From contig SMSO01000033.1 of assembly GCA_004764695.1 (NCBI GenBank), positions 2,418,001-2,482,000 on the forward strand: a DNA stretch of 64,000 nucleotides, written 5' to 3'. The stretch is from Schizochytrium sp. TIO01 (taxonomy: Eukaryota > Protista > Bigyra: Labyrinthulomycetes). Positions within the stretch are counted from its first letter, which is position 1. Every line of letters begins with the position of its first letter. The position numbers and the translations under genes are program-made. Below the pieces are notes generated by a model, which saw only the letters and a program-made list of their open reading frames with translations, was not told the DNA's origin and did no database searches. Of the stretch, positions 34,897-60,068 are shown piece after piece.

Positions 34897-35072
34897 TCAC
34901 ATGAAGGTCTTGCTTCACCACGGTGTTCTCAATTTATGTGTGATAGTGCTCACCCTGGCTGTTCTATCTTCTCTGTGAGTTGCGTCACATGAAGGTCTTG
35001 CTTCACCACGGTGTTCTCAATTTATGTGTGATAGTGCTCACCCTGGCTGTTCTATCTTCTCTGTGAGTTGCG
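34897..35072. repeat. Exact 88-bp tandem duplication
   Basis: tcacatgaagg...gtgagttgcg at 34897-34984 and 34985-35072. Confidence 0.95.
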
Positions 35073-35469
35073 TAGTCTCGTTAGACTGATCAACGGCTGT
35101 AACGGATCAATCTTATGATTCTTCATTTCATGCATAAAGAAAATGAGAATTTAGTTGTAACAAGGGTGGCTACAACTTCTTTTTTTTAATACTTAAAGTT
35201 AATCGTAATTAAGTAATAGCTGCATGTTTAAAATAAACGTAGTTTACTTTAAGACGCCCCTTTTGGGTAAATGCTCTGCATAGGGTTTTCACCCTCAAAG
35301 GCTAGCAATGAAGAGCTCATGTTTTTGTTTTAAAACTTTAAACAATGATACAAACAAAATAAAAAGGTTAACTGGACAGAAAAAGAGTCAATTAAGGACA
35401 GAGGGGTTGGAGGGGGTTCACAATTAGGTAATGCAATTAATCTTTCGAAGTGATAAGTGTGCATAGATC

Positions 35470-37167
35470 TTATCCAGCTTGATCCCCTTCATCCAGCTCA
35501 ATGTTATTGATTGTGGATACAATTGAAGTGACTAAACCATCGAAGCTTGTGCCACAGGAAAAGTCCTGATTGATAAGATTGTTTTTGCTACTAAAGCCAG
35601 CAAATCCGATATCACGAATAGGGACAGACCAAACAATACTCATGAGGCAGCCCTGACCTTTAGGCCCGGGACGAATTATAATACCTTCGATGAAGGGGAG
35701 AATTTCACTTAATGCGTTCATCCCTTCTCTGTCGGACGCAAAGACAGCCGTGTCAATCGTGCTGGTGCAGCACATAATAATGCACGCATCGGGATCATCT
35801 TTACTCACGTCATCAGACTCGCCCTCCAGCAACCCTAATTGAGGAGGAAACTCCACAGGATCAGGCTGACTTCCAACTTTGCATGTTTCGCGAATTTTTG
35901 GATTTTCTGGAAACGTGGACGCTGAAACAAGCTTTGTATATTTCCATGTGGTAATAAAAATACACTTGCGAAAAATCTTCTCTTCATCCGTTTCACCTAA
36001 GAGCCCGAAATCCTCAGAGTATTGGAAAACACGAAGATCTGCATCATCAAAATTCTGGAACTCTCTAAAACTCGTGGGGATTTCTGCAATGTTTACTTCT
36101 GCGTTGTCGGTCCAGGATCCAGTATAGGTGCGATTATATATATCAGGAGCGGTCCATGCTTTCCAGATGCGGCGTTGTAGATTTTCCATCGATTCCGGGC
36201 GCCACGGCAGGTCAATTCGTGCATTAATACGTTTCATGGCATGCATCTCACATCCACGAGGGAGTATTTGAACGCCGAAGTGAGCAGGACTTCGTGTATC
36301 GAGATGGTTCAGTGCATTATAATAGGTCCAATGCCACGAGTTATCAACGACACTAGTATGCGCAAGGCCCGCAATTTGGCCATGGGCACTGTCGCACCCT
36401 GAGCATGCCAACCTAAACTTCTCTTCACTGGTAAGATCAGGAACAGACTTGGTAACATCGACAATGCTACGGATAAAAGCTTTGTGTTTTCTGATTTCAA
36501 CGCGCAAGAGCTCATTTTCTTTGCTCAAGTTAATTGCGCCAGAGTTACGAAGGGCCTGCACTTCAGTTTGGAGCTCTGCAATACGCATTAAATATATGTC
36601 TCTATCCTTTTCAAGTTGTTCGTTCCGTTTCTTTAACTCCTCGCGCTCTCGTTTTCGTTTTTGGCGCGTGACTCGAGAGGCAGCCGCTACAATTTCTCGA
36701 CGTCGCGCAGTTTCTTCAGGTGTTTCCTTCACGCGAGAGCGTCCGGTGCTCGAGCTGTTTTCTGATGAACTCCTAAATATGTGCTGGTACTGACTTTGGT
36801 GCTCCACTTTAACTTGAACATTCTTTGCATTAGATCGTGCATCTGTCTTTGACGATGAGTCGTTCTTTTTACCTCGGTTCTCTGGAGCACCACTTGATGT
36901 AGCTATCTTCGCAGGTTGGTATGAGTTTCCATAAAATGCCTCACTGCTATTTGTGCGTCGAAAGTCACCTATAACTGCCTCATTTATGTCATTAGTAGTG
37001 CCTTCAAGGAGGTGCATATCAGAGACCTCGGTGTCGTCCTCTTCACCTTCATCTTCCTCCTTTGCGTGAAGAAACGCTAGTTCCGAAGGTTCGAGCACTA
37101 GGCTCGATGGGAAGAAGTTTCCATCATAGAGCGTTTCATGCTCCACGTCGTTGTCCCAGTCTTCCAT
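35470..37167 (-). CDS. Atypical bZIP plus START/SRPBCC-like transcription factor, paralog 1
   Basis: MEDWD..YDGNFFP..LVL N-motif; RRREIVAAASRVTRQKRK basic region plus zipper; C-terminal domain shared with paralogs. Start set at ATG 37167 by alignment with the paralogs. Confidence 0.85.
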   Translation of the reverse strand: MEDWDNDVEHETLYDGNFFPSSLVLEPSELAFLHAKEEDEGEEDDTEVSDMHLLEGTTNDINEAVIGDFRRTNSSEAFYGNSYQPAKIATSSGAPENRGKKNDSSSKTDARSNAKNVQVKVEHQSQYQHIFRSSSENSSSTGRSRVKETPEETARRREIVAAASRVTRQKRKREREELKKRNEQLEKDRDIYLMRIAELQTEVQALRNSGAINLSKENELLRVEIRKHKAFIRSIVDVTKSVPDLTSEEKFRLACSGCDSAHGQIAGLAHTSVVDNSWHWTYYNALNHLDTRSPAHFGVQILPRGCEMHAMKRINARIDLPWRPESMENLQRRIWKAWTAPDIYNRTYTGSWTDNAEVNIAEIPTSFREFQNFDDADLRVFQYSEDFGLLGETDEEKIFRKCIFITTWKYTKLVSASTFPENPKIRETCKVGSQPDPVEFPPQLGLLEGESDDVSKDDPDACIIMCCTSTIDTAVFASDREGMNALSEILPFIEGIIIRPGPKGQGCLMSIVWSVPIRDIGFAGFSSKNNLINQDFSCGTSFDGLVTSIVSTINNIELDEGDQAG

Positions 37168-37934
37168 GCCCACGTTCACTGCAACTTCGTATTGCCTTGT
37201 TCCTGTTATCCTTAACTATTAAATGTAGTTGAAAGGAAGAAATTTCAATCCCCGAATTGATCTTGACGATCCTTCTGCACGCTGCCTCTTGATGGTCTCT
37301 GGAAAACGCGAAAGAAAGTCTGGGAAAACGCAATGTCACAATTGAGGTTGATCTCGAGAATTCAAGCCATGCACTAAGACCACTCCTCGGTAATCTTCTT
37401 TGTATGCTTCGAAACAGTTCTACTTTCAGCTAGCGACTGAAAACTTCTATCGAGTTTGCCTCCAGCGCTAGCGATGAGTTTGTCTGTGCACTGGAGTGAA
37501 GAATAAAGCTACTTGATTCAAGACTTCTGCGAACCACTTTATAATGCCCACTTTCCTCCACTCTTATCCAGTGAACTGCTGCTGTCGTATCCGCTCACCT
37601 GCCCGTCCGTTCTTCCGCCAACCTGCGTGTGCGCTGCAGCGACGATGCAGATGACGATAAGGTTGACAATGACAAGGATGACGACCGAAACCTTCTTTTC
37701 TGCAAGTTTCCAAACCAGTAGGTAGGCTTGACTATTGCAACACTTCGCCAAGTCCTTGTTCTTGGCCACTGTCGCGACGATGTTGTGAGGGCCGTGCGGC
37801 CGAGTTCTATATGGCGTGTGATTGGAGACTATGGCGTGGTGTTGGAAAGCGTGGGAATCGTCATCTCCAAAGAATAGGCCTTATAAAATTCGCATTTGTT
37901 TCTTTTCAGCTCGCCTATAAAGAAATAACACCCT

Positions 37935-37935
<1 letters not shown>

Positions 37936-37972
<37 letters not shown>
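37936..37972. repeat. (AAT)n microsatellite
   Basis: About 12 direct AAT units. Confidence 0.95.
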
Positions 37973-37973
<1 letters not shown>

Positions 37974-38700
37974 GCATCTTCGTCTCGCGGAGTTCTCGCT
38001 TCGTTCGAATGATGGCGCACGAAATTTGCGTAGATGATGGCTTTTGTTGTGGTGGTCTTCAATAAAATGTGCCAGGCAGAAGCACACAGGCCGCCCGTAG
38101 CAAACCAGAAAATGTGTGCTCTGTGCTTTGTGTTACTCTGGACTAGTTTGACCAGCTGATGGATAGATTTTGGTGAGTAGGATGGGGCATTCATTCTGTG
38201 CCAGATGATTTTGATCTACGATTTTCGCGCCATCCATTAAAAGCAGCAGGTCAGTTAGACCACTTTTATCTGCTTTTTCTTTCTTTCATGGTCATGATTT
38301 TTAAAGGTTTTCTTCGAAAAGAAACATTGACTAGGCGCTCTTGGAAACTCAGAAATACTAATGCTAGCTGCACATATTTAGGTATTTTAAGACTTGCCAT
38401 GGCTCAAGCGTACAAGCCAAGCGAGCGACTCGTTGATAAAAGGTTCAAAGTTCGTGCTGTGTAGAGGCTTCGATACATATGGATGAGATAATAGTACTTA
38501 AAGTTATGTAATGGAAATGTGAATAATATGTGTAGGGTAAGAAACATGCAAAAATAAGGGAGGTAGTATGCAGAATACAGTAGCGTAAAATGCGCGTGAG
38601 GAGGGCGAACCAGTTCATAGACACGCACGGTTTTGAATTGTTCTATCCAGTGTCGTAGGAAGTATGTTTTAAATTTAAGTAGACATCGGAAATCTCAGTC

Positions 38701-40398
38701 CTATTCAACATCAAGATTGTTGAGAATATTGATAAATGTGGAAAAAATCAGGTCTCCGTTGGGGCCGCAGGCAAAGTCATTCGTCACTAAACCGTTGTCG
38801 GTGGTGAAGCCGCTGTATCCGTCTTCAGTAAGCGGCCAAGACATGAGAAAAGTCAGAAGACTACCCGATGACTCAGGGCCACGCCTGATAATCACGCTTT
38901 CAACTGAAGGCGCATTTAGTCTGTGTACACCTTCAACCTTGGGCTTCAGAAGATTAGAATCCACTGTAGTTGAAGTGATAATGACGCATGCCTCAGGATC
39001 GTCTTTGTTAGTAGTCTGGAAGGCTTCAGCAGGAGGGTGAAGTGCAGCGTATTCGAGAGCAGCAGAATGCTCTTGAAGTTGTGCTTCGCTCACACCCTTC
39101 TCTGTCCTTTCGCGAGGACTTTCAGGGTACGATGACCTTGTGATCAGTTTGGTATATTTCCATGCTACACATAGTGTACAGTCCTGAGCAGACCTTTCTT
39201 CATCAGTTTCTTTATTGCGACCAAATTCCTCTACATAATGATAGATGCGCATTTCGGCATCATCTGGCTCTTGAAGGCCTTCAAAACAGGAAGGGATCTC
39301 TTCAATCGAAACGATGGCATTGTTCGCCCACGGGCCCGAATATACGCGAGTGTAAACCTCAGGCGCAGTCCAAACCTTCCAGATCTTTTTGCGAAGTTCC
39401 TCAATACTTTCTGAGCGCCAAGGAAGATCAAGACGAATATTTGAGCGTTTTGCCGATGTAAGGTCACATCCACGTGGTAACAACTGGACACCAAAGTACG
39501 CAGGCGACCTTCTTCCGCAGTAATCGATTGCATCGTAGGGTGACCAGTGCCATGAGCTGTCCACAGCACTAGTGTAAGCAAGGCCAACCACCTGAGCCAC
39601 GCCACTGTTACAGCCATTTCGAGCGAGCCTATACCTTTCCTCGCTGGTGAGACGTGGGACTGCTTGGGTTGCTTCTACAATATTACGAATGAAAGCCTTG
39701 TGTTTACGAATTTCAATGCGGAGAAGATCATTTTCTTTGGATAAGTTGATTGATCCTGAGTTTCGCAGAGCCTGAACTTCTGTCTGCAATTCAGCAATGC
39801 GCATCATGTACACATCTCGATCCTTCTCAAGCTGGTCATTTCTTATCTTGAGTTCCTCACGTTCACGCTTGCGTTTCTGTCGTGTTGCGCGTGAAGCTGC
39901 TGCTACAATCTCACGTCGACGGTCTTTCTCCTCCTCAGTTTCCTCCCTTGAAGCCCTGGTGCGCGAGCATTTCGCTGTGGGAGCAAGAGACTCTTCTGGC
40001 TTAGCTTTCCTGGAGCGTCTCATCTGAGCGGATGCGGATACAAACGGGAAATCTTCATCATCATTTTGATCAAAACTGTCCTTGATTGCATCAAAACTGC
40101 TTTCGACGTCACCTAGGTCCTCTACTTCTTCCCGGCAGTTCTGTGGTTGGCGACCTTGACCTCGTGGCATTTCAATTCTTTTAACTAGGTCTTCCTCGTC
40201 TTCGCTGTGATGTTGATCTACGCTAGTAACTTTCTGGTCTTTGTCATCAGAGTTTTGTTTTTCACCATTAGAACTATCGATGCCATCATCTACTGCGGAA
40301 AGAAGCTCAATCTCTGAAGCGTCGAGAACTAAGTTAGGTGGGTAGAAATTGCCCTCGTAAAGCCTTTCGCCCTCAAGTTCACAATCCCAGTTATCCAT
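38701..40398 (-). CDS. Atypical bZIP plus START/SRPBCC-like transcription factor, paralog 2
   Basis: MDNWD..YEGNFYPPNLVL; RRREIVAAASRATRQKRK; QDCTLCVAWKY, EACVIITSTTV, GVHRLNAPSVESVIIRR. Confidence 0.85.
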   Translation of the reverse strand: MDNWDCELEGERLYEGNFYPPNLVLDASEIELLSAVDDGIDSSNGEKQNSDDKDQKVTSVDQHHSEDEEDLVKRIEMPRGQGRQPQNCREEVEDLGDVESSFDAIKDSFDQNDDEDFPFVSASAQMRRSRKAKPEESLAPTAKCSRTRASREETEEEKDRRREIVAAASRATRQKRKREREELKIRNDQLEKDRDVYMMRIAELQTEVQALRNSGSINLSKENDLLRIEIRKHKAFIRNIVEATQAVPRLTSEERYRLARNGCNSGVAQVVGLAYTSAVDSSWHWSPYDAIDYCGRRSPAYFGVQLLPRGCDLTSAKRSNIRLDLPWRSESIEELRKKIWKVWTAPEVYTRVYSGPWANNAIVSIEEIPSCFEGLQEPDDAEMRIYHYVEEFGRNKETDEERSAQDCTLCVAWKYTKLITRSSYPESPRERTEKGVSEAQLQEHSAALEYAALHPPAEAFQTTNKDDPEACVIITSTTVDSNLLKPKVEGVHRLNAPSVESVIIRRGPESSGSLLTFLMSWPLTEDGYSGFTTDNGLVTNDFACGPNGDLIFSTFINILNNLDVE

Positions 40399-43175
40399 GG
40401 TGCCTGACGGCGATCTCGAGAATTGCTCTTTAGGTTTCTTCCTTTCGCTGTTGTCTCCGTCAGATGTCGAGAGATGGGATTCAACGATGGCTTACGCGCA
40501 CAGGATAGCTTGCCCGCGCACGCACAGAGAGCAACGGAAGTAAACTAGAAAGGAATTAGTTAGCTCGACCGATGCTACCGACCTCTTCGAGGAAAGAGAG
40601 TCACCTAGAGAAGAAGAGCCCAATAGCTGTTAGAGGCGCTTACAATCGATGAGGGCAAGCTCCTGGTTGCCGCTCAGGCGCTTTCCTCGCGAACACGCTC
40701 GGACTCGCAAGGAACCTGGTTTGCACTGTGCCCACCTCGAATTATGATCTTGAAGATTTGGAAAGTGATAACTTGAAAAAGAGAAGAGTCACGATTAAAA
40801 AGAAAGGAATAATAACTATGATTAACAGTAGACATCTGCTAACATCATTGGTTAGAAAGTTGAAAAAGGTTTTTTCGGAAGTCAGCATTTCCCTTCTTTT
40901 TATTCATCTTTCTATTAAACAACAACAACAACAACAACAACAAAAAGAAAAAAAAAGGTCTCAAGTGTGCAGAGAATCAGAAATGTTCCCTCTGCGAGGA
41001 AACATTCTCATAATTTAGCCACTACCTAGCTGCTACTGCCTACTGGAAACCAACCCCATTCTTTCGCGTTCGTCTACAATGTTAATGGGCGGCAATAACA
41101 GCGTACCAACTACGCACATCGAGTTTTCGGAGGAAACTAATTGAGCAAATCACATCACTAAACTTTAAAAAACAAAACAAAAAAAACAATCAGTTCCTCT
41201 TCACTTTTCTACTATCGAAAAACTAAGTGAAGCAACACTCCACAAATTTTAAGAGATCACTCATGGTGCATGATCTGTCATTCTTCACACGGTCCGGTTG
41301 CTGATTGAACCATCTCGTAACGACCCGTTGTGACTTCTTTGAAGAAAAGCACAAGACAGGTAATAGTGGTAAGCTGAAAGAACGACATAAATTAATAATA
41401 ATGAAAGAATGTTAAAGTGTTATTTGTTTTTAGAAAAAGGGATTTTTGTAATTAAAAATGTTTCTGTGAGCGAATGCGTGAACGATTCAGATTTCTGCTT
41501 TACCCTTAAACTTGAAGGTCGAGATACTAGAACAGCGTGGTTGAAGGGGGCTTCTGCCCTTTCTTGTGCTCAAATGCGACCGGCATTTCCGATGTGCGGG
41601 TCTCCGCATTAGGCAGCTCTATATTTTGTTGCTTTCAGCAACCCCGAAGAAACGTTATGCATCAGAGGATCAGTGGTGATTGATTGTGCCTTCCACCATA
41701 CTAAAAATGCCGCGTGAGAAGTCTGGCTCAAGATTAGGACTGATTTTGCTACCCCGTTTGTAGAGTGGATCTTGGCAGAATGGCTAAACTTCGATCGTTG
41801 TTGTGGTGTACAAAGGTCCTTGATATGGTGTAGGACTTCTGTCATTTTGCCCTGCTCGCCATTGAGAAAACCTTGCAATTGCTTGGGAGCAGATGCCAGA
41901 ACTGTCTTTGAGATAATTGCTGCTATGGATGCAGCAAGCTCTTATTCTGTATCCCTTGTCGACGATAACCTCTTCGAAAACACAGAACCACTCAAAGCCA
42001 AAACGTCGAATTACTCAGCGCCAACTGAGCTGATATAACCGAATCGCAAGATTGCAACCATGTAGGTACTTTAAGACCAGACATTCTCAATGTCACTCGT
42101 CTGCTCCGCACTCGCAGAATGTCAAGTTCAAGAATGGCCCAAGTCCAACTGCGGCTGCGACGTATGTAGATGTTCGGGTACCTATCGAAGTGCCTCAGGT
42201 GGTACCTCAAGTGCTCCGCGAAGTACAGAACACGCGATTACAGATTACATAAAATGTTTTGGTTCACTCATTTGCATTTCATCTATTTGTTCTTGCAACT
42301 CCAACGCCACTTCGATATTCAAGCTGTGCATTGTTTACTTATTTATTTATCTATTTATCTATCCATTTATTGATTGATTGATTTATTCATAATAATAATG
42401 ATCACTGTTATTATAAATCATTAAAAGCTAGTTCTCCTTTAGCAGAACTAAGAGAGAGTGAGACAGAGATTGGTGATGACTCTCATTTGTGGCGAAGAGG
42501 GGACAACGTTGGCGCACAAAATTTGCGCATCCGCACTTTAGCGGCTGTAGATCTTGAGCGTCGAAGGCCACGTGGATGGATGGGCTCTCGAAGCCAAGCT
42601 GGCGCTGCGAGTTGTGGGAAATGCAAGAATCCTCGGTAAGCCGGACCTGAGTGGGCGATGGCCCTAGCGTTCAGGGTCAGAACTAAGAATGGAAAGCATT
42701 ATTGATCGATTGATTGATGGATGGATCGATTGATGGATTGATGGATTAATCGAGTTACACAAGTCATAAGAGTTTTTAATATTAACAAAAAATAATAAAT
42801 GAGAGAATTATAAAGAAAAGTAATGTCGCGGAAGAGAGTTTGAGCGAGTAAACTAAGTGAGCTTTACAGAATGGGTAAATCAGTTTGTAAAACTCGTGTT
42901 TGGCGACATCCACGTCGACAATAACACAGATGATAGGGAAGGGGTTAGAGGGTGAAGAGGAGAAGTTGTGGGTACATAACTAGTAGACGCTGGAAGAAAA
43001 TCAAGATGCAGAAAATATAATAGGTTATGCTATGTAGGTTATGCTATGTTGCCTGTTAAAAAAAGAAAAGACAAAAGAGGGAGATGTGTCGAGCTCTGCT
43101 CTTTTGCTTTTGGTCATTGTCACGGTGGGTGGTAGCGAAATGATGATTATTTTATTCAATTTACGGCGGCTGAAA

Positions 43176-45002
43176 TTAGCACGCATCGTTTGGGTCCACG
43201 TTGTTAAAGTTGGATAGCAGCGAGGTAATGAACAAATCGGTATTGCGACCGCAGGAGAAGTCAGCGTTGACTAGACTATTGTCACTAGTGAAACCAGAAT
43301 AGCCATCTTCTGTGAGAGGCCACGATGACACAAAGCTTGGAATACAGCCTCCTGTACTGTGGTCTGGACGAAGAATGATACCCTCGATAAAGGGTGAGTT
43401 GATGCGGTGCACACCCTCCTGCTTTGGCACAACATTTTCGACAGAGGTCGTACAAACAATGATAACACAAGCATCGGGATCGTCCTTGCTCACGGGTCCA
43501 AAGGCTTCCACGGGGGGGTGAAGATTAGAATAGTCATGCATGGAGGCAGCATTATCGACAGAGTGTTCAAGATGGCCCTGACCGAAAGTCGCAGTTGTTC
43601 CATTAGAATATGGAGATGAGGATACCGACGAGGAAGCGTACGGGTTGCCAGGATAATATTGGTGCTGCATTTCTGGACTTGAGGATCTTTGTTTGGTGCG
43701 CGGGTTCAATGGGAAAGAGGAAGCTGTGACAAGCTTTGTGTATCTCCATGTTACGACTAACGTGCAATCTCTGGCGGACTTCTCCTCATCCGTTTCTTTG
43801 TCTAGGCCAAACTCTTCACGGTAGTGGAACACACGCATTTCTGCATCGTCTGCAGTTTGGTGTTCATCAAGCCCAGACGGTATCTCACAAATGCTGACCT
43901 GGGCATCGTGGGCCCATGGCCCAGAGTATGCACGGCTGTACACTTCAGGGGCTGTCCAAGCTTTCCAAATTCGTTTACGAAAGCTTTCAATGTTTTCGGG
44001 GCGGGGCGACATATCAAGTCGGATATTTACGCGTTTCGTTGATAGCAGGTCACATCCACGCGGTAGTAGTTGAACGCCAAAATGTGCTGGACTTCGGGAC
44101 CCTGCTAGATTAAGAGCATTGTAGTTGGACCAGTGAAAAGAGGTATCCACCGCACTGGTGTAGGCAAGACCCACGATTTGACCAACGGCACTGTCACTAC
44201 CACTACGTGCGAGGCGATATTGCTCCTCCATTGTGAGTTGTGGTACAGCGCGGGTAGCATCTACAATGCTGCGAATAAATGCTTTATGCTTCCTAATCTC
44301 CACGCGTAGGAGTTCGTTTTCTTTAGATAAATTAATAGCACCTGAGTTACGCAGGGCTTGCACTTCCGTCTGAAGGTGCGCAATGCGTGTGAGATAAACC
44401 TCACGATCCTTTTCAAGTTGGTCGTTGCGACTTTTTAGCTCCTCACGCTCACGCTTGCGTTTCTGTCTAGTAGCTCGTGATGCTGCAGCAACGATGACCC
44501 GGCGACGATTAAGCTCCTCCTCGTCTTCCTCCTCGTCAGCATCCTCGTCATCATTGTCTTTCGGAGTATAAGTGGGAGCTGGCGCCTTTCTTGATGAAGA
44601 GTTCGCAGAACCTCCTCGTCCACCGCGAGTTGATTTTGTGGCTTTGGGCTGGGCCTTCTTTTTGGGCTGAATCTTCCTCGCAGGCGCTTTCGAAGCAACA
44701 GGCGCAGGGTCTGGTGAACCTGAGTTATGGCTTCCCATGCTAGGACTTCCATTATAATTAACCCCGTTAGTGTTGCTATGCATTCCGTATGACTGCACGT
44801 ATTCTTGGTTTGCGTTCGCGAAGCCCATCGTGGCATGATAGGCAGAATCCGCTTCACTTTGGCCAGCAGAATCTGAGATATCGTCGGGAGCTGCTAGAAT
44901 CTCCATTTCTGAAGGCTTGAGCACGAGGTCTGGCGGGAAAAAATGACCATCGTAGAACTTTTCTCCTTCGCCATCATCACCGTCAATGTCCCAGTTCTCC
45001 AT
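43176..45002 (-). CDS. Atypical bZIP plus START/SRPBCC-like transcription factor, paralog 3
   Basis: MENWD..YDGHFFPPDLVL; RRRVIVAAASRATRQKRK; RDCTLVVTWRY, DACVIIVCTTSV, GVHRINSPFIEGIILRP. Confidence 0.85.
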   Translation of the reverse strand: MENWDIDGDDGEGEKFYDGHFFPPDLVLKPSEMEILAAPDDISDSAGQSEADSAYHATMGFANANQEYVQSYGMHSNTNGVNYNGSPSMGSHNSGSPDPAPVASKAPARKIQPKKKAQPKATKSTRGGRGGSANSSSRKAPAPTYTPKDNDDEDADEEEDEEELNRRRVIVAAASRATRQKRKREREELKSRNDQLEKDREVYLTRIAHLQTEVQALRNSGAINLSKENELLRVEIRKHKAFIRSIVDATRAVPQLTMEEQYRLARSGSDSAVGQIVGLAYTSAVDTSFHWSNYNALNLAGSRSPAHFGVQLLPRGCDLLSTKRVNIRLDMSPRPENIESFRKRIWKAWTAPEVYSRAYSGPWAHDAQVSICEIPSGLDEHQTADDAEMRVFHYREEFGLDKETDEEKSARDCTLVVTWRYTKLVTASSFPLNPRTKQRSSSPEMQHQYYPGNPYASSSVSSSPYSNGTTATFGQGHLEHSVDNAASMHDYSNLHPPVEAFGPVSKDDPDACVIIVCTTSVENVVPKQEGVHRINSPFIEGIILRPDHSTGGCIPSFVSSWPLTEDGYSGFTSDNSLVNADFSCGRNTDLFITSLLSNFNNVDPNDAC

Positions 45003-45540
45003 TCTAACCTCGATGGCCCTACGTTCTGGGAAAGAAGTCGCTCAGGAAGTTGTCACAGTCCCAGGTCTCGCACGTGTCGAGCTCGTTTTCGCTAGATTCT
45101 TTACCAAGTTTCCCTAAATTGGGGAATAATACTCCTGGCACTCTAGCTCTCAATGTCCCAGAGATGGAGCTTTCTGAGTTGACTTCTATCTTCGCACACA
45201 GCCGCGTGCTGCAGGTGCTTAAGCTGGCCTTTCGTAGGCAGACTTCCTAGCAGCAGCGATCCGCAGGACACCAAGGCAGCGTCCGATCGCGCTCAACGCG
45301 TATCCCAGAGGGTTCGCAGTGAAAGCGTTGCGTCGAGCCTCGCGAGGTGGCGCCGCCTATCCGTAGGCGCCGCCGCAGGGGCTCTTCGTTGCTGCTGCCT
45401 TGAGCTGCTCGCGGTGATTAGGGCCTTGCCGCCAGCATCAGAACACTGTAGAATAAACGTGCGATAAACAGTTTACTACAAGTATTGTCAGGGCCATCAG
45501 AAAAGCGAAAGAGCCAACTTCGATAAGCAAAACAAGAAAG

Positions 45541-45630
45541 AATAAAACAATAAAACAATAAAACAGTAAAACAGTAAAACAATAAAACAATAAAACAATA
45601 AAAAAAGAATAAAACAATAAAACAATAAAA
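45541..45630. repeat. (AATAAAAC)n 8-bp tandem repeat
   Basis: About 11 near-perfect units upstream of paralog 3. Confidence 0.9.
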
Positions 45631-47191
45631 GAAGTAAAGAAATAGGGACCGCAATAACAAACTTCACAAACAGCACTCGAAATGAAATGCTCTCTCGACA
45701 AAGCCTGAAATGAATGGCATCAGAAGCACAGCAGGAAACCGAGGACGGCACATCTATCTGCTGCAAGTGACTCGAGGCGGCGGAGGAGACCTCAGGAGTT
45801 GACAATTACCACCACCTCGAGGAAGAGGAAGGTCCCCGAAGGCAGGACTTGCCAAGTTTGGGGCGCTCAAGTACTACCGAATTGGTGCTGTACCCTTTGA
45901 AGTGCTTCCAAAGTAAGCACAGAGAGAAGAGGCAATTGGGCTCAAGATCGATCAATTCTACTGCTATGCTATGTTTCACGCTTGAAGAGCTTCTTCGAAA
46001 GGGAGTACGGAAAACGAACTCTGAAGCTCCCGGAAGACGCTCTAGCGAATGCTGCGCCAGCGTCGAAGCGCGATGAGTAAAGTGCAGAAAACTGATTCAA
46101 CAAAATGCAATTCAACAAAACTCTCAATCAAGTTCGGTCGATGACAAACCCTTCGATCGAAGCAGATTAATCCGCGCTCCAAACTTCACGAAACGGTCGA
46201 CCTTTGGGCCGGAGGGCCTTGCTGCCACGCGGGACCAACGCCCGGCAGGCTGTCTTCGGCCTGCTTGCACGCCTGCTCGCTAGACATGGAGCAATCGGCT
46301 GGACCGTCCAGCGAGACACGTGTGGACAAAGACACAGCTGGGCTCCTCCCAGAGTCCAGATGAGGTTCTCGCAGGCTGGCACGCGTCGCGAGCGCCGAGA
46401 GCGGTCTAGGAACCCAGCGAGAATAGCGGCGGCCCGCAGACGTCTCTGCAGACCTCCTCGTGCACGCGAGATGAGCTGCAAGGACTTGCCTGCCATCCAG
46501 GGGTCGGTGAAGTGAATGAAGTCTTGAACGAACTGATGAAACGAGACAGCGAAGCCACTTCCTTTTCTGGCGAGTGGCTGGCGTGAGATACCCGCCATCT
46601 TTCACCTCGGAAGCGGGTTTGGAGTGCACGTGGATGCCCTTGGCCTTCGCGATGATAGCCTGGAGGTCTTGCTGATCATCGCCATCGCGCCGTGCAGTTC
46701 AAGGCCCATGGCGGCGCAGGTGATTCTCGCAACCATCGGCATGCTCATGAGATCAGGGTCCACGCCATGATCCATGATCCATGATCCGGCGAACACTACT
46801 CTCCATGAAGTCAAGGATACTAAACGCAAATGCTTTACTCCCAATTCGCAAGCAGCTCTTGAGCTAGACTCGTGACATCGGCGTTGATGCCCATGCCATC
46901 CTTGGTGGAAGCAGAGCTGTCTGGGAAGGTGCCAAGAGGAATCAGCATGTGGAATGATTTGCTTTTGTGTCCTAAGATGTGTGGAGCTTTCGATGCCAAC
47001 GATTGGCGTTGGTGTAGTCTAGGTGAGCACTTTTCTTAACTTGTGCAAAACACTCAGAATAAGCCATGAAAAGCACTCATCTGGTTTGGCTCAAACTAAA
47101 GTGAGTGAGTACTCCCTACATACTTAATTATTATTATTGTTTGTGACAAACAATTACAAACAAATACAATTACAAATACAAATACACATAC

Positions 47192-47192
<1 letters not shown>

Positions 47193-47231
<39 letters not shown>
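47193..47231 (+). repeat. Poly(A) tract, 39 nt
   Basis: Uninterrupted A run preceded by CAAATA-type repeats. Confidence 0.95.
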
Positions 47232-47232
<1 letters not shown>

Positions 47233-48260
47233 AGCGCTTTCAAAGTTTTTAATTAAAACCATAGTTCGAGTTTTGGTACATTTACAGATAGAACGTGACA
47301 TGACGGAACAATGTGAAAGGAAGAGCTGCGTTGGATTGTTCGGAATGGAAAGGATAAATAATTTAAGAATGAAAAGGCCAGGTGTGCTATGCGTTGACAG
47401 GCATACGAACTTCGAGCCAAGATGGCGTTCTTGGCTACTCTCATCGACTCGTGAAATATTGCAGTAATAAGAGCAAAAGAAAGACTCTTGTAAGTGCAAT
47501 TCAAGTTGACTATCCAGAAAGTGGACAACTTTGGATAAAACAATATTTTTTGGTCGTAGTCTTTTCAAGCTTGGGTCAAAGCAAAATAGTTATCAGCCAT
47601 CAGTTTCGATGTTCACAATGAACGCAACACACTCCCATTATGCGTGCGAGGCTTTCAAGCCTCAATTCACCAGATGATTTGCATGCCTACTTAGAATATT
47701 ACTTTCCTTACTAAACAAATAGCAGTAAGGAGAGAGAGTTCATATGAGTGAGGCAACTGACCAGTACATAGTACCTCACTAGTAATAACTGTACAAGTGC
47801 CTCAATATAGACACGCATTACATTTGCCCCATTCGTTGTGTGCATCTTTGTCATAATGATCATGGTATAGAAGACAAAGCACCATCGCGAAACGAAAACC
47901 ACGGCGACGGCTCGCCGGTTGCACTCGGATCTGTAGCGCAGCGAAGCCAACGAGAGGGTTTTGCCCAGGGTTTGGCTTTCCTGGGTACGTGCGAGCTCCT
48001 TCAGAGAATCTTGCCGATCCGGCAACGGCGTCGTCTCCACTGCCCTGTGACGAGTTGCCACGCTGTGCAAGAAGATTCGTTTGCTACGCGCACCTTGAAG
48101 GTGGAAGAGGACCAGTAGAGTGCGTGCTGGCAATCGATAAGGGCTACTTGAAGTGGCTAGAGGGCGTGCAGGCTACATTATCGGAATTGGCCTCTTTGGA
48201 TTTGACACGGGAAGTCAGTCACACGGATAGATAGCAGTGCTCCCTCAGATTTTAGGCACA

Positions 48261-49211
48261 ATGTATCCGCAAGCATCTGGTTCTGGGCATGGATACCCGC
48301 ATCAGCAGGGCCAACATATGGGAGGTCATGCCCAGCCTGGTCAGCAAATGCCGGCAATGGGAGGATTTGAAAACATGGCAGCAATAGCCGAGAACCAGAT
48401 GTTTCAGAACTTTGCAAAGCAAAGCCTTCACCAAGCTGGTGCTCAATTTACAACGAGCATCTTGCCCGAAGCAAACACGTTCTGGAGCAATTTACGTTAT
48501 TACTTTCACGTTGACAACCGTTACGTCTTGCGGAAACTAGGCTTGCTGGTCTTCCCTTGGCGCCATAAAAAGTGGGAGCGTATTCGCTTTGGCGACGAAT
48601 CGATGGCATCTGATTCATCTGCGGCCAGGCAGATTGAGTTTGCCCCCCCTGTCAGCGATGTGAATGCGCCTGACCTCTATCTGCCGGTTATGGCCTCCAT
48701 CACGTACATTCTTTTTATCGGCCTCCTCAAAGGAACGAAGAAATCCTTCAATCCTGATGTTCTGCAGAATACATTCACAACGTGTACCCTTGTGCTCATG
48801 CTCGAAGTAGCTATTATGAAAGCTGGATTGTATTCTTTGCCCGGAAGTCCCGAGCGTAAGCTCGCTGTTTTTGATATGGTCTCTTTTGCTGGCTACAAAT
48901 ATGTTCTTGTAGCTCTCAACCTTTTCATCGGCATTGCCTTGGGAAGCACTGTGTACAACGTTGTCATGTTTTACCTATGCCTATGCATGGGTTTTTTCAT
49001 CTATCGAACTCTTGAGCAGGCCTTGCCTCAGATGGACTATGAGTCCGCTGGCCACAAGCGCCGGATGTACTACCTCATCGCCTGTGCTGCATTGCAGTTC
49101 CTTACAATCTTCTTTCTTGGATTTACTCGCGACCTTGGAGAGAGCTCTGTGCCTGGAATTTCTTTCTCGGCCTTTTCTGATGACCTCGATGACGATGAGG
49201 CTGATGTATAA
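48261..49211 (+). CDS. YIF1: YIF1 ER-Golgi transport membrane protein
   Basis: LRYYFHVDNRYVLRKLGLLVFPW, PPVSDVNAPDLYLPVMASITYIL, FNPDVL, DMVSFAGYKYV; first ATG at 48261, just after a ttttag acceptor-like site. Confidence 0.92.
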   Translation: MYPQASGSGHGYPHQQGQHMGGHAQPGQQMPAMGGFENMAAIAENQMFQNFAKQSLHQAGAQFTTSILPEANTFWSNLRYYFHVDNRYVLRKLGLLVFPWRHKKWERIRFGDESMASDSSAARQIEFAPPVSDVNAPDLYLPVMASITYILFIGLLKGTKKSFNPDVLQNTFTTCTLVLMLEVAIMKAGLYSLPGSPERKLAVFDMVSFAGYKYVLVALNLFIGIALGSTVYNVVMFYLCLCMGFFIYRTLEQALPQMDYESAGHKRRMYYLIACAALQFLTIFFLGFTRDLGESSVPGISFSAFSDDLDDDEADV

Positions 49212-50489
49212 CCGAAATCTTAACCTGAATAGTTTGAAATTTTGACACTTTTTATTCTTTTCATTGCTCTCTCAACCCACTGCAGTTTGAGTTCGGCCAC
49301 TTTGGAAAACCGAAGTATTTCAATTCTAGTATCAAGTCAAGTATGTAGATTGTTTCTGTCAGTGAATAAAACCTGGCTGGCGAATTGTTGAAAGATAATT
49401 GAGTTTATAAATCAACTAGCACAACCAGATTGTACTGTTTTTTCCTACTTGAGCATCCATTCGAAGAATGTGGAAGTGGTTAGTGGATGATGAATGAGAA
49501 AATATTATTTGAAGTGTTATACCCTTTTTCCAACATACCTCTACAAATTGAAAATTTGTTACAGAAACAGCCAGTAAAGAAACAATGCTTGTTACACCCT
49601 TTTTCCTCTCAAAAATCGCAATCATAAGCATAATCATTTAAATAAATACTTCCGTGGTCATGCCCAGCCCTGAAATGAGCTAAAGTATCTATTTTTAGAA
49701 GAGTTAAAAAAAGCTATTCCGCCAACAACCGGTTTGTTTTCAAGGTCACGGGCGCGGACATATGTTTACCCTCTCTGATCAAATATTGAGAATAAAGTAT
49801 CTAAATATTCGACAAATATACGTTTGGAGCACTCTTAAAATTTCTTTAAAGGTTGTTTATATATCAATTCCGCAAACGGGGAAGCACTGGTATCTTGCAA
49901 AGTGGCATTTTAATTGAAAAAGACCAGGTCTGATAGTTTTTTGTATCTGGACAGAACTTTAGATACTTGGAGATCGTTTGCGATTGCATAGTGAAGCTAG
50001 CAAAGTTTCAATTTCTCAAAGAAATATACAAGTGGCATTCCAGAGAAACAAGCGAAGTAAATACAAAGAAGCAATGTTGCATTTAGTGGTGTGGACATCT
50101 TTCTCTTTAAAGGTTGACAGGTTTTTAATGTGCTGCAAAAAGAGAAAGAACAAAAAATTAATAATGCAAATTATCTTATTATGTTCTCCAATTGACGCAA
50201 AAATAACGAACTTCTAGATACTTCAGAATACAAGACACTCAGAATCATACTGCCTTCGCATCTTTCTTTTTTTCTTTTTTTTAAACGGGGAGTGATCTAC
50301 TAGGGCCCTCTGAATGCCCTTAGGATGGATGACCTTGTTTAAATTGGGAAACAAACGTTTAAACCATGATTTCACTCAGAAGTCCTCTGGCCAGCTCTAT
50401 ATAGTAAACAACAGACAGCACCAACAATGTTACAAGAGAACATCATACGCAGCCTTCAAAAGTATTCGAGACTCCCTTCTAACACCATA

Positions 50490-50592
50490 TAACGATGCCA
50501 GTTGCAGATTCAGGAGATCTTTTTAGAATTATCCTGAAAAACAAAAAACAAAAAAATTCGCTGCAGAAGTTCATCAGGAATACTCTCGAAGC
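50490..50592 (-). pseudogene. F-box motif remnant
   Basis: FESIPDELLQRIFLFFVFQDNSKKIS*ICNWH with in-frame TGA; matches the F-box pattern LPDELL..IF.FL...D...IS.VC..W; surrounding frame is broken. Confidence 0.5.
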
Positions 50593-50835
50593 ACCCGGTG
50601 CTCGATCATTCTCTTTTCGATTGCATTGGCTATTAAAAAATAGTAGTAACTTGAATCCCAACGCCAGCCTCAAACGTTCCAGCTGGGATAGGCACAGGTA
50701 TAACAATAGTCTATTGGCATGGCATCCTTTCGCCTTGTGGTTCTGACAAAAGTAACGACACAATCATTTAAATATTCCAACTAACGGCCTGATAGAAGAG
50801 AGTGTGCTAAGAAACATTATGACATCAATGCCCCA

Positions 50836-52500
50836 CTAAATTTCATCGGGATCAGGAAGCACACTGTTCATTACACCAATTTTAGTTGTGAAAAAAGCAT
50901 CGCCATTAGTTCCACATGAAAAGTCAGAGTTCACAAGGTTGTTGTCATTCGTAAAGCCAGTGTAACCGTCCTCGCACAAAGGCCAGGAGACAATAAATGT
51001 CAGATAACAGCCTTCATAATTTGGACCAGGGCGAATAATTGCACCCTCGATAGAAGGGGAGTTGATCCGATGTACGCCGGCCTGTTGGGACTTGAAAACA
51101 TCCGTATTTACAGAGGTTGAGCAAATGATGATGCAAGCCTCCGGGTCATCTTTGCTGACGGACTCAAAAGCCTCGGCCGGAGGGTTCAGAGAATATGAAA
51201 AGGGTACTGCTGAACTATTGCAAATCGCAGAAGGACTGAGAGGGTTCTCGGGGAAAGAAGAAGTAGTAATTAACTTTGTGGGTTTCCATGTGGCGACCAG
51301 AGTGCAGTCTCGCGAGCGCTTTTCATGGTATCTGCCACGAGTTAATCCAAGCTCCTCGGTATAGTGAAAGACACGGATATCAGGATCCTGTGGCGTTTGC
51401 AATTCACTAAAACCAGTGGGGATCTCTGCAATGGACACCAAGGCATTATGTGCCCAGGGGCCAGAATAGGTGCGCGCGTAGACTTCCGGGGACATGCGTG
51501 CTTTCCAGAGCCTCTTACGGATCTCTTGCATGCTCTCAGGGCGTAGAGGAAGGTCAACACGGATGTTGCAGCGCTTAGCAGCGGCCAAATTACATCCACG
51601 GGGCAGAAGTTGAACGCCAAAGTGCGCAGGGCTACGAGTATTAAGATGATTCAATGCCATATAATCAGACCATCGCCAAGACGCGTCCACTGCACTAGTA
51701 TAAGCAAGGCCGACAATCTGGGCCACTCCACTATCAGTACCCTGACGAGCCAGTCGGTATTGCTCCTCACTAAGGAGCCGCGGTATTGCCTGAGTTGCAT
51801 CCACGATACTGCGAATGAATGCTTTGTGTTTACGGATCTCAATACGCAGCAATTCGTTTTCTTTAGCAACATTAATTGTACCGGAATTGCGTAAGCCCTG
51901 GACTTCAGTCTGCAACTCTGCAATTCGTGTCAAGTAAACGTCACGATCTTTTTCGAGTTGTTCATTACGCTTTTTCAACTCTTCGCGCTCGCGCTTGCGC
52001 TTTTGACGGGTAGCCCGGGATGCAGCAGCAATCATCAAACGGCGGCGACTTTTATTGCTGGGTGCTCCTGCTCCAGCGGCTCCCTGGTTTGAAGTAATTT
52101 TACTACTATCACCATAGCTCCCACCTTCTCCTTCTCCATCACCTTCGTCGCCATAATAATCGCCGTATCCTTCGCCATCGTAATCTCCATAGTCATCGAT
52201 TTCCTCAGTTGCACAAGGCTCGGGTTTAGGTGGGGCAGATTTTGAGCGTGAGCGTGATGACCTTGACTTATTTTCACCTCTCGGTTCGGCACTATCGGGC
52301 TCAGCCAGGAACAAACCAGAGGCGTCTACAGGAAGATTGCGGTCGGAGGAAGGCTGCGAGGACGCCTCATTCTCAGGCGGCAAAGTGTCGTCTGATGCAG
52401 CGAGAATCTCAATCTCCAAGGGGTTCAAGACCAAGTCAGGTGGGAAGAAGTTACCGTCATAAAACCTCGCGGCCTCGGCATCATTATCCCAGTTCTCCAT
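50836..52500 (-). CDS. Atypical bZIP plus START/SRPBCC-like transcription factor, paralog 4
   Basis: MENWD..YDGNFFPPDLVL (ATG 52500); RRRLMIAAASRATRQKRK; RDCTLVATWK, EACIIICSTSV, GVHRINSPSIEGAIIRP. Confidence 0.85.
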   Translation of the reverse strand: MENWDNDAEAARFYDGNFFPPDLVLNPLEIEILAASDDTLPPENEASSQPSSDRNLPVDASGLFLAEPDSAEPRGENKSRSSRSRSKSAPPKPEPCATEEIDDYGDYDGEGYGDYYGDEGDGEGEGGSYGDSSKITSNQGAAGAGAPSNKSRRRLMIAAASRATRQKRKREREELKKRNEQLEKDRDVYLTRIAELQTEVQGLRNSGTINVAKENELLRIEIRKHKAFIRSIVDATQAIPRLLSEEQYRLARQGTDSGVAQIVGLAYTSAVDASWRWSDYMALNHLNTRSPAHFGVQLLPRGCNLAAAKRCNIRVDLPLRPESMQEIRKRLWKARMSPEVYARTYSGPWAHNALVSIAEIPTGFSELQTPQDPDIRVFHYTEELGLTRGRYHEKRSRDCTLVATWKPTKLITTSSFPENPLSPSAICNSSAVPFSYSLNPPAEAFESVSKDDPEACIIICSTSVNTDVFKSQQAGVHRINSPSIEGAIIRPGPNYEGCYLTFIVSWPLCEDGYTGFTNDNNLVNSDFSCGTNGDAFFTTKIGVMNSVLPDPDEI

Positions 52501-54397
52501 GGATGTTTTGATATGTGTTTTCCGATTCACTAAGACGTAGCAAGGCCCAGAGGCACTGCAAGAAATCAGCTCCGGACTAGTTACCAAGTGCTATGCTATA
52601 GATTTCACCTGGACTCCACTTCTCCTCAATAGATGTTTGGGAATGAAGACCAGAAAGAAGGAAGTGCAGTCTAAACTTTTAAACTTTTCTTCTTTTCTCC
52701 AAACCAAGTTTTTGTCCCTCACACACGTGCGCCAACCACTGCGTGGGGCTCCAAGCTGACCTTGCCAATCAGTCCTTGCTCACCCAAAAAAACAAGATGT
52801 ACTTTCGTATCAATGTGTCTACCCAGATACAAAGTACACACAAACGTCAATATGAATGAACGTTCGAGGTAAACAATATGCGAAGTCTTCCAAGTAGCAG
52901 TAGATGCGCAGCTGACGAAACTTCTCTTTGTCTTCGTATTGTTCACGGCACAGCAAGATATATTCAAGGTCTGAAGCAATTCCAGTTTTTGCAGCTCTAC
53001 AGACGACTATCTCCAAAATTCCCACGAGATAAATCCCCTCACTGTACGCTAAGTTTCACGGTGTACGCGCAATCAGGTTCACTTCAAGAGCTTGTGCCAA
53101 AACAGCGAGCTATGTCTTCAAGGGCGATTTTTTGATACCTCCTTGAGCCAATCTCGCCAAGACTGCGCTCACAGCAATTTCAAGACCAACTAAATCAAAT
53201 GATCAATTCTCGGCACCGCCGCAGAACTTCTCGTGGGTGATTACTGCTCTTGTCAACCTGGGAGCCTTTACGTCTCGCTTTTCCTGTATAGCAGAAGCTT
53301 GACTACACCCCGCCTATACAGAGAAGTCGATTTCTCTAGCGGACCCCCTTCACAAGCCAGTATTTGAGCGACGCTGGACAGTGGGATACTCCACCAAGAA
53401 CAAGTGTATTGCGAGATGGCAGCTGAGCCAATAAATCAGTCTCTACCCTCGGACGCCGCTTCAGAATCGGCAGCGGCGGCGGCGGGATAAGCCCAAGCCT
53501 AGCCTTCAGCCGTCCTCGCCGCCGTCGCCCAGCTTCGCCACGCCTGCCACCGAGCGAGGGAACTTCTGATCTGCAATTGCTTTCTGTCTCCTCCTCCTCC
53601 TCCTTCTTCTTCTCTTCATGTTGATCTCCTTTCTTTTTCCCTGCACCGCGAGTGAAGTCACCCATCTACCGTAAACCCTATCCATCTACGCACCGAATTT
53701 AAGTTGATTTTATCCAACGAAACTGCGAGGGCGTTTCCGTTTGAAATTATCACACGAAATTCGCGCAACCTCGAACCCGGCTGCCCCGCCAAAAGGACGA
53801 GCAAAACTCGAAGTTGAAGTCGCGAAGCCAATGGGCTATGGCTGCGAGCTCGGCTCTCCACGCTTCGGAGAGATGCAGGGACCGGGGGAGACGCCCAGTG
53901 TCTGCCTGCTCCGAGGCAGAGGCCACACTGCGTCATGCGGAGATCGTTCACGGCCTAGATGCGCGGCATTCGCAAACTGTTTTTGCAAAGCGCTTCCATC
54001 CGGCCAGGGTTGGATCGCGAGTACAGCTCAGCCCTGCTCGCGCTAAAGCAGATGCGAGAGGCCGCCAGCGAAGGAGCGCGAACGGAGGGGATGGATCCAA
54101 CAAGGGGATCTCCGCGACGGCCGCGACCGACCCTGGGCGTGAGTTGAAGAAAGTTGAGCGAAGATCGACGATGTGAGAGCGGCTTTGCTGCCACTGCCGG
54201 AAAACGAAGAACTGCCGCAGAGAACTCGAGGAGACAGCTGGAGTAGTGAGGGCCGGTGCAGCGATGTGGTGGGGGGTGACCCTGGTAGAGGCGTTGCAAG
54301 CATGCACGGAGAACCGTGCTCGGTCTTTCCATGAAGTTCAAGTTCGCACGCGCGAGAACTTTGGAAATTCTCTGTGTTTTCTCAGGCTTTCTGATAC

Positions 54398-54498
54398 TTC
54401 GGAAAAGCACAAAAGAACAGGAGGAACAAAGAAGATTAGTTATAGTAGTTAGTTAGTTAGTTCTGAAAAGCACAAAAGAACAGGAGGAACAAAGAAGA
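54398..54498. repeat. 63-bp-period duplication of the sequence abutting the TTAG array
   Basis: gaaaagcacaaaagaacaggaggaacaaagaaga at 54402-54435 and 54465-54498, each followed by TTAG units. Confidence 0.9.
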
Positions 54499-54984
<486 letters not shown>

Positions 54985-59125: not shown

Positions 59126-60068
59126 ATTTGAAGGCTATTTATTAAAAAAGAAAATTCTTAGCTTCCCAAAATTTATGCTCTACTTAAACACTGTTCTTCT
59201 TCAACTTATGTATTACAGCTTAACCTTTTTCCTTTACTTAACCTCATTGCTACTGTTCTTCTCAAACTTTATGTTCTTCTTAAACTTTATGTACTCTACT
59301 TACGGAGTGAGGAATCATGAATCCTCACATAGTTCTTCCATTCGAAATACAGAATCACTCTGTTTAGGCGTTCTGTTCTCCTTGAACTCAAAATTTGGCA
59401 CTTAATTAGTAAAATCTAACATTTACATTAGCGACGTAGTCCCAAATGCACAGCTACAGTATCATTCAAAAGAAAGATTGTTGAGTTCTCGTTTCAATAT
59501 TCAATTTTGTTCGTTCCTTACATGTAGTCTATGCTTTACTTAGTGTTATTGATACTGTTCTCCTCAAACTTAATGCTTTACTTAGTGTTATTCATACTGT
59601 TCTTCTCAAACTTTATGTTTAACCTCATCTTATTGCTTTACTTAGTGTTATTCACTGTTCTTAATTTGAAGGCTATTTATTAAAAAAGAAAATTCTTAGC
59701 TTCCCAAAATTTATGCTCTACTTAAACACTGTTCTTCTTCAACTTATGTATTACAGCTTAACCTTTTTCCTTTACTTAACCTCATTGCTACTGTTCTTCT
59801 CAAACTTTATGTTCTTCTTAAACTTTATGTACTCTACTTACGGAGTGAGGAATCATGAATCCTCACATAGTTCTTCCATTCGAAATACAGAATCACTCTG
59901 TTTAGGCGTTCTGTTCTCCTTGAACTCAAAATTTGGCACTTAATTAGTAAAATCTAACATTTACATTAGCGACGTAGTCCCAAATGCACAGCTACAGTAT
60001 CATTCAAAAGAAAGATTGTTGAGTTCTCGTTTCAATATTCAATTTTGTTCGTTCCTTACATGTAGTCT
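58993..60068. repeat. Exact 538-bp tandem duplication
   Basis: 58993-59530 repeated at 59531-60068; identical ORFs 59175-59405 and 59713-59943. Confidence 0.95.

Follow-up and report, generated by a model that had tools for sequence, protein, structure and literature searches.

Four bZIP genes of Schizochytrium sp. TIO01 with a predicted START-like domain: candidate lipid-sensing gene regulators

A 64,000-nucleotide stretch of the genome of Schizochytrium sp. TIO01, an oil-producing marine thraustochytrid (assembly GCA_004764695.1, contig SMSO01000033.1, positions 2,418,001 to 2,482,000), hereafter the window, carries four paralogous genes, numbered 1 to 4, whose products combine a basic leucine zipper (bZIP) region with a C-terminal domain predicted by structure modelling to have the START fold. 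That this bZIP-START architecture is real we consider very probable. With the modelled fold, the four genes are good candidates for lipid-sensing gene regulators. The overall reading, which we favour with moderate confidence, is that they encode dimeric START-fold bZIP factors in which a ligand would alter dimerisation or DNA binding; that the domain binds a ligand is suggested by the modelled fold and by analogy with known START proteins. Databases name the proteins of this family only "BZIP domain-containing", the C-terminal domain being invisible to sequence annotation.

A predicted START fold in the C-terminal domain

The C-terminal domain of gene 4 was modelled by AlphaFold2 (AF2) from an alignment of 59 sequences. 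The model has a predicted local distance difference test score (pLDDT) of 85.8 and a predicted template modelling score (pTM) of 0.85, and all five models reached a pLDDT of 84-86. According to DSSP, the domain consists of a helix (residues 14-41), three strands (46-53, 59-69 and 80-86), two helices (94-106 and 108-114), six further strands (123-129, 145-153, 166-182, 213-234, 246-261 and 268-277) and a final helix (301-316). This order of elements, a1-b1-b2-b3-a2-a3-b4 to b9-a4, is what we take, from the structures of MLN64 and StAR, to be the START arrangement. In a full-length AF2 model of gene 2, a START-like domain of the same topology occupies residues 252-561.

A Foldseek search of the PDB yielded 29 matches at E <= 1e-3. 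All those listed were START domains (CERT, STARD10, StAR, StarD13, ACOT11, STARD4 and a bacterial START), and the best was CERT (2e3o, 8.8e-6). VIA-align, which is independent of Foldseek, was used to compare the gene 4 domain model with 48,161 representative chains. Its ranks 1-12 were all occupied by canonical START domains, with Z between 16.1 and 10.9 and 178-221 residues aligned: BmCBP (Z 16.1, 221 residues aligned), StAR (15.8, 209/210), ACOT11 (15.7, 207) and MLN64 (STARD3; 15.2, 205) were followed by STARD4, STARD5, CERT, STARD10, STARD6, a bacterial START and PCTP (14.6-11.6, 178-219) and by StarD13 (10.9, 181). Below the START ranks came the minimal helix-grip proteins Ups1, PR-10, PYR1/PYL and polyketide cyclases, at Z <= 9.0. 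This step down suggests that the domain resembles the long StAR-type START and not just any Bet v1-like fold. Because START domains for different ligands receive Z scores no more than about 2 units apart, the ranking assigns no ligand class.

A first-pass annotation of this DNA, made from the sequence alone, had guessed a START or helix-grip fold for the C-terminal domain. Structure prediction and fold searches, set beforehand as the test of this guess, bear it out: the AF2 prediction is confident, and Foldseek and VIA-align both rank START domains first. These results lead us to conclude that the domain, as modelled, is a START fold. It is considerably larger than its relatives of known structure (324-364 residues, compared with about 210 in START), and the surplus is found in loops, mainly in an insert of low confidence (domain residues 183-225) that is about 40 residues longer in gene 3.

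An atypical bZIP region and its modelled dimer

The relatives of the window proteins, the matches to solved structures and the register of the zipper together indicate firmly, at the level of sequence, that the C-terminal domain is preceded by a real but atypical bZIP. The family profile matches the solved bZIPs 7aw7 (E 5e-5), C/EBP alpha (4.5e-4) and GCN4 (9e-4), and Pfam bZIP_1 is matched by 12 of the 59 relatives (best 9.4e-10). Of 51 family members, 49 have the invariant Arg(+8), and in the alignment of the window proteins the distance from Arg to the first Leu (R24 to L34) is exactly ten residues. GCN4 has the same spacing. Five heptads follow, with d positions at +18, +25, +32, +39 and +46 from the Asn position; these are L/L/(Y,F)/L/L in the 51-member alignment and L/L/Y/L/L in the window genes.

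The basic region is atypical at the position of the invariant Asn, where genes 1-3 have Val, gene 4 has Ile, and all five close paralogs (the four window genes and a fifth copy, described below) have one or the other. The window sequence reads V/I-A-A-A-S-R-A/V-T-R, and the Asn of the N-x2-A-A-x2-[SC]-R signature is absent. Across 51 relatives the position is occupied by V (22), N (17), M (4), I (3) or L (2), and the canonical N-A-E-A-C-R-x-x-R is kept in other family members, including copies elsewhere in the same genome. The 17 relatives that retain Asn imply that the wider family has canonical members and that the window copies are a variant type. There is a precedent in stramenopiles, since bZIP classes in which the basic-region Asn is replaced have been described in the oomycetes Phytophthora sojae and P. 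infestans (PMC4046829).

In the full-length model of gene 2, the basic region and zipper form a continuous helix of 57 residues (155-211; block-mean pLDDT 84-97), interrupted at 212-218 by a break that includes the four residues R-N-S-G. A second helix (219-246) runs from there into the first helix of the C-terminal domain. The block of 89 residues that comprises the bZIP and the second helix has a mean column identity of 88% among the four window genes, and the basic regions of the five close paralogs are almost identical. In the zippers of the four genes, positions a, d and g are identical and e is identical save for one Leu/Met difference; an Asn stands at one a position, and all four zippers keep the g-e' pairs R-E and E-R.

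Residues 150-565 of gene 2 were modelled as a homodimer alongside three controls, and ipSAE was taken as the median of three runs. The homodimer scored 0.33, compared with 0.00 for the best of the three controls; among proteins of known structure, 21 of 30 homodimers and 0 of 23 monomers attain this value. The partner pLDDT was at least 55, and contact agreement between runs was at least 27%. The confident contacts form a symmetric, in-register series (183-183, 190-190, 197-197, 204-204) and recur with a spacing of 3-4 over residues 176-240; they cover the zipper and the second helix up to the START-like domain and exclude that domain itself. In the model, the dimer forms a parallel coiled coil in register, and it passes its controls. 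Heterodimers, which the earlier proposal also named, are suggested by the near-identity of the zipper positions: with a, d and g identical and e nearly so, nothing in the zipper would be expected to block cross-pairing of the paralogs.

Distribution and evolution of the family

With a profile of the C-terminal domain alone, 1.84 billion cluster representatives were searched at E <= 1e-3, and 121 representatives in public data matched. In most of the aligned representatives, the domain is C-terminal and follows the conserved helical block known from the window proteins. The genome of Schizochytrium sp. TIO01 (64 Mb in 37 contigs) contains at least 39 matches to this profile, and a bZIP precedes the domain in every genomic open reading frame (ORF) that was opened. 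The fifth close paralog (G000:C32:2527512-2528489) is situated about 45 kb past the end of the window; its product has 516 residues and is represented by an MMETSP transcript. Further arrays are found on contig 7 (320-405 kb) and contig 11 (5-57 kb), with single copies on contigs 4, 13, 30 and 33. Several members of the contig 7 and contig 11 arrays are pairwise identical or nearly so, and the loci L009 and L010 encode the same protein; because of these identical copies, contig 11 may be an alternative haplotype of contig 7.

Sources were looked up for 30 of the 121 representatives. Those named are Aurantiochytrium, Hondaea fermentalgiana, Mucochytrium quahogii, Aplanochytrium stocchinoi, Aplanochytrium minuta and Thraustochytrium sp. 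LLF1b, all of them Labyrinthulomycetes, and the sole named record from outside this group belongs to the dinoflagellate Durusdinium trenchii (CAK8989359, P0074). The family appears to be confined mainly to labyrinthulomycetes, and the Val type of basic region is conserved from Aplanochytrium to Aurantiochytrium. The dinoflagellate record, a 983-residue model, and FCC1311_003902 of Hondaea (P0003) contain two complete bZIP-START-like units each; these are either merged tandem genes or true double-unit proteins.

The nearest relatives in Hondaea bear locus tags that follow one another (FCC1311_003892 to 003922) on a single 216-kb contig, and comprise five units, with one gene model holding two; their placement in an array was read from the locus tags and the shared contig size. 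A maximum-likelihood tree groups the five Aurantiochytrium copies in a single clade (SH-aLRT 100) with the five Hondaea units as its sister clade (95), and in it the other subfamilies pair one-to-one between Aurantiochytrium and Hondaea. The sister clades of five genes suggest parallel expansion of one ancestral locus or homogenisation within each lineage.

Gene layout, expression and selection

All four window genes are intact and intron-free, lie on the minus strand and encode products of 554-608 residues. The ORF of gene 1 (35470-37179) gives 565 residues from a conserved ATG at 37167 (35470..37167, stop codon included), with the N-terminal motif and linker at 36736-37167, the basic region, zipper and second helix at 36469-36735 and the START-like domain at 35473-36468. 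In gene 2 (38701-40398, 565 residues), these parts are encoded at 39952-40398, 39685-39951 and 38704-39684, respectively. Gene 3 (43176-45002) is the longest, with 608 residues; its N-terminal motif and linker lie at 44538-45002, its bZIP and second helix at 44271-44537 and its START-like domain at 43179-44270, where a Ser/Pro-rich insert is about 40 residues longer than in genes 1, 2 and 4. Gene 4, with an ORF at 50836-52587, encodes 554 residues from a conserved ATG at 52500 (50836..52500); the N-terminal motif and linker span 52078-52500, the bZIP block with Ile at the Asn position spans 51811-52077, and the START-like domain spans 50839-51810. The start codons of genes 1 and 4 were placed at 37167 and 52500 because the N-terminal sequence M-E/D-N/D-W-D is conserved in all four genes, and a public protein of 554 residues is 100% identical to gene 4 from the ATG at 52500.

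The common layout thus runs from an N-terminal motif through a disordered linker, the bZIP and the second helix to the C-terminal domain. The N-terminal motif, of about 35 residues, is acidic and aromatic (W-D; F/Y-Y-D/E-G-N/H-F-F/Y-P; L-V-L; E-hydrophobic-x-hydrophobic-L), and the linker is a low-complexity segment of about 110-140 residues that can hardly be aligned among genes 1-4. Over the full length, genes 2-4 show 46-52% identity to gene 1, and the C-terminal domains of the window genes show 52-61% identity to that of gene 4. The ORFs and the domain alignment contain every part described in the first-pass annotation, which had recognised four minus-strand paralogs with one shared layout. 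Its description of a tandem family of four holds as far as the four paralogs are present. However, a YIF1 gene on the plus strand (48237-49211; Pfam E 9e-62) lies between genes 3 and 4, so that the array is interrupted once and is not strictly contiguous, and with the fifth copy beyond the window, four is an undercount.

Repeats are found on both sides of the array. Shortly past the 3' end of gene 1, an 88-bp sequence is exactly duplicated in tandem (34897-35073). A perfect (TTAG) array of 121.5 copies (54499-54984), accompanied by a duplicated lead-in of 63 bp (54398-54528), is found inside the contig some 2 kb upstream of gene 4. A 42-bp minisatellite with about 30 copies and an 88% match (57810-59083) accounts for a dip in GC content to 30% and a strong strand skew at 57648-59634.

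The window genes are transcribed and under purifying selection. Public proteins near-identical to all four gene products exist (99.0-100% identity). Gene 1 is 99.8% identical to P0006, gene 2 is 99.6% identical to the complete MMETSP transcript P0004, gene 3 is 99% identical to the complete MMETSP transcript P0001 and gene 4 is 100% identical to P0005. Complete Aurantiochytrium MMETSP transcripts match genes 2 and 3 and the fifth paralog, and it is on the MMETSP transcripts that the claim of expression rests. Contigs from four different studies are colinear with the genome over 35400-37926 and 38470-40500, with no internal joints, and leave 37965-38470 nearly empty; this pattern points to two intron-free transcripts, corresponding to genes 1 and 2, although the RNA status of the source runs is only a guess. 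Strain differences within genes 1 and 2 comprise 11 synonymous and 2 non-synonymous changes, a ratio that indicates purifying selection.

Another MMETSP transcript, P0007, matches gene 4 minus 42 residues (51667-51804), which correspond to the first helix of the START-like domain. A splice form without this helix was considered and rejected: the missing stretch is not bordered by GT-AG, its ends coincide with a short direct repeat (GTGGAT/GTGGAC), and a further base is absent. For these reasons P0007 is probably an assembly or template-switch artefact.

Proposed mechanism and alternative explanations

We propose that the START domains would hold a putative small hydrophobic ligand (a sterol, carotenoid, fatty acyl lipid or ceramide, for example) and that its occupancy would shift the stability or geometry of the dimer and thereby DNA binding, protein half-life or cofactor recruitment. 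Occupancy would be expected to alter the dimer because each START domain is attached straight to the end of the coiled coil. The paralogs would probably share DNA targets, form heterodimers without restriction and be distinguished chiefly by what each START domain senses, since the basic region and zipper are shared and the START domains have diverged; common targets with different inputs are what such a family would be expected to show. There are precedents for this scheme. The START domain of plant GL2, an HD-Zip IV protein, is required for the protein to dimerise and to be stable, and this requirement does not depend on DNA binding (bioRxiv 10.1101/2021.11.23.469727); for HD-Zip III/IV proteins, START is also reported to control dimerisation and stability and to raise transcriptional potency (PMC10226595). 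In aureochromes, a LOV sensor C-terminal to the bZIP is reported to govern dimerisation and DNA affinity. A bolder proposal can be built on this, which we regard as tentative and rather doubtful: labyrinthulomycetes might have evolved START-gated factors of their own, independently of plants, in which dozens of heterodimerising paralogs on one zipper scaffold would each read a different lipid (sterol, carotenoid, polyunsaturated acyl lipid or ceramide) and feed lipid status combinatorially into gene expression, including that of genes for the synthesis of lipids and docosahexaenoic acid (DHA).

Several results weigh against the reading of these proteins as ligand-responsive START-fold bZIP factors. 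Pfam gave no match within this domain in any of the 59 members, and a search of the PDB with the family profile (hmmsearch) returned no START chain even at E <= 10. A search of the same genome with PF01852 found ten other loci and none of the window genes; when the family was aligned by hhalign (local and global) with these ten canonical START domains, the probability was 0.4%, a weak negative because the START alignment was crude. The START domain is cryptic, because no sequence method detects it. A spacing R-D-x6-W that is common to the family and to canonical STARTs can be discerned by eye; the motif-by-motif equivalences to START that the first-pass annotation had drawn (RDCTLV to PRDFV and others) received no statistical support from Pfam, the PDB search or hhalign. 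The structural match itself is of moderate quality, with a root-mean-square deviation of 3.5-4.5 A at about 10% identity, and the START resemblance may reflect extreme divergence or convergence. As regards the bZIP, the window proteins score 10-13 bits with the Pfam bZIP models, for which the cut-offs are 22.3 and 27.6, and bZIP_2 gives E 0.1-0.8; the replacement of Asn by Val or Ile in all window copies makes their DNA specificity, and even sequence-specific binding, uncertain. The passing score of the dimer may stem from the model's memory of solved bZIPs. Lastly, the N-terminal motif has a pLDDT of 49-61 in the full-length monomer model of gene 2 and shows no confident docking on the START domain. 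The idea that this motif might be an autoinhibitory peptide lying on the START domain was dropped as unsupported at these values.

The main rival explanation, which we judge unlikely although it must be taken seriously, retains the START fold and dispenses with the ligand: the domain would be a second dimerisation, stability or protein-docking module of an ordinary bZIP factor. The role of the GL2 START in dimerisation and stability, independent of DNA binding (bioRxiv 10.1101/2021.11.23.469727), fits such a module, as does the attachment of the domain directly to the end of the coiled coil, and in the PDB hmmsearch and hhalign no sequence similarity to lipid-binding STARTs was seen. However, the confident dimer contacts are limited to the coiled coil at 176-240 and exclude the START domains, and the structural match extends over the complete START fold and takes in the C-terminal helix, which in STARTs of known structure closes the pocket. 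Moreover, many diversified domains on a conserved zipper look more like diversification of ligands or inputs. The same lack of sequence-level support (PDB hmmsearch, hhalign), together with the fact that the isolated domain was modelled for one member only and from 59 sequences, could be taken to mean that the START resemblance is a prediction artefact and that the domain has another fold. We find this hardly credible, given that all five models reach a pLDDT of 84-86, that the topology recurs in the independent full-length model of another paralog, and that two aligners agree, with START 5-7 Z units above the rest.

The substituted Asn raises a different question, namely whether the window subfamily has lost specific DNA binding, in which case its members could be dominant-negative partners of relatives that keep the Asn, or coiled-coil lipid carriers or tethers outside the nucleus. 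The occurrence of Val or Ile in all five close paralogs and of Val in 22 of 51 family members would agree with such a loss, as would scores under the Pfam bZIP thresholds. On the other hand, there is strict conservation of the basic residues and of Arg(+8), and the first Leu stands at exactly the canonical distance; such conservation would be surprising in a decayed DNA-binding surface. Moreover, Asn-replaced bZIP classes occur in oomycetes (PMC4046829), and the Val type has been kept from Aplanochytrium to Aurantiochytrium. A loss of specific DNA binding is in our view quite improbable.

Comparison with known systems

The non-canonical bZIPs of oomycetes are similar to the window genes in the substitution of the invariant Asn and in their expansion by gene duplication (PMC4046829). 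They differ in the rest of the protein, as the study of P. sojae bZIPs reports no extra domain save one PAS, and no Val/Ile type with a START fold (PMC4046829). Closer in organism is FabR of Schizochytrium sp., which is reported to be a bZIP repressor of acl, fas and pks genes (PMID 38042223, summarised in PMC11122798). FabR is likewise a thraustochytrid bZIP that controls lipid and DHA synthesis; for the family described here, it is a lead and not a match.

With the animal START proteins (StAR, STARD3/MLN64, STARD4/5/6, CERT, PCTP, STARD10, ACOT11 and BmCBP), the modelled domain shares the full nine-stranded helix-grip with both terminal helices. In contrast to them, it has about 10% identity and no profile match, is larger through long loops and is fused to a transcription factor. 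Aureochromes, the bZIP-LOV proteins of stramenopiles, resemble the window proteins in that the sensor follows the zipper on its C-terminal side, so that effector and sensor stand in inverted order. Here the domain has a START fold and is not a LOV/PAS domain, and the hosts are non-photosynthetic labyrinthulomycetes, whereas aureochromes are reported only from photosynthetic stramenopiles. Neither Pfam, applied to the window proteins and 59 relatives, nor the fold searches gave a PAS/LOV match in the C-terminal domain.

No bZIP-START fusion was found described in the literature searched, full text included, which agrees with the remark in the first-pass annotation that no characterised one was known; the rice label "HD bZIP START", considered as a precedent, refers to HD-Zip III. 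In the same literature, START-bearing transcription factors are described only in plants (HD-Zip III/IV), and their ligands are still debated. The family described here has expanded to dozens of genes in heterotrophic stramenopiles and would offer a simpler, single-celled system for this design, in which gene knockouts have been reported. Since DHA, squalene and carotenoids are produced industrially with thraustochytrids, regulators that sense lipids directly, if these proteins are such, would be obvious targets for engineering.

A close parallel in design is found in plant HD-Zip III/IV proteins such as GLABRA2 and PHABULOSA, in which a DNA-binding module is followed by a zipper (zipper-loop-zipper in class IV) and then by START, and which are likewise dimeric and form expanded paralog families. 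In these plant proteins, competence for DNA binding is under the control of START, as are dimerisation and stability. Unlike them, the window proteins would read DNA with a bZIP basic region, their START is invisible to sequence methods, they have no SAD or MEKHLA region, and their hosts are heterotrophic stramenopiles and not plants. Pfam found no homeobox in the window proteins or in the 59 relatives; because the homeodomain is absent, the family does not belong to HD-Zip although it is alike in design. An independent invention of the HD-Zip-START design is most likely, and a second, probably independent zipper-START fusion would mark a recurrent solution to the coupling of lipid state to transcription.

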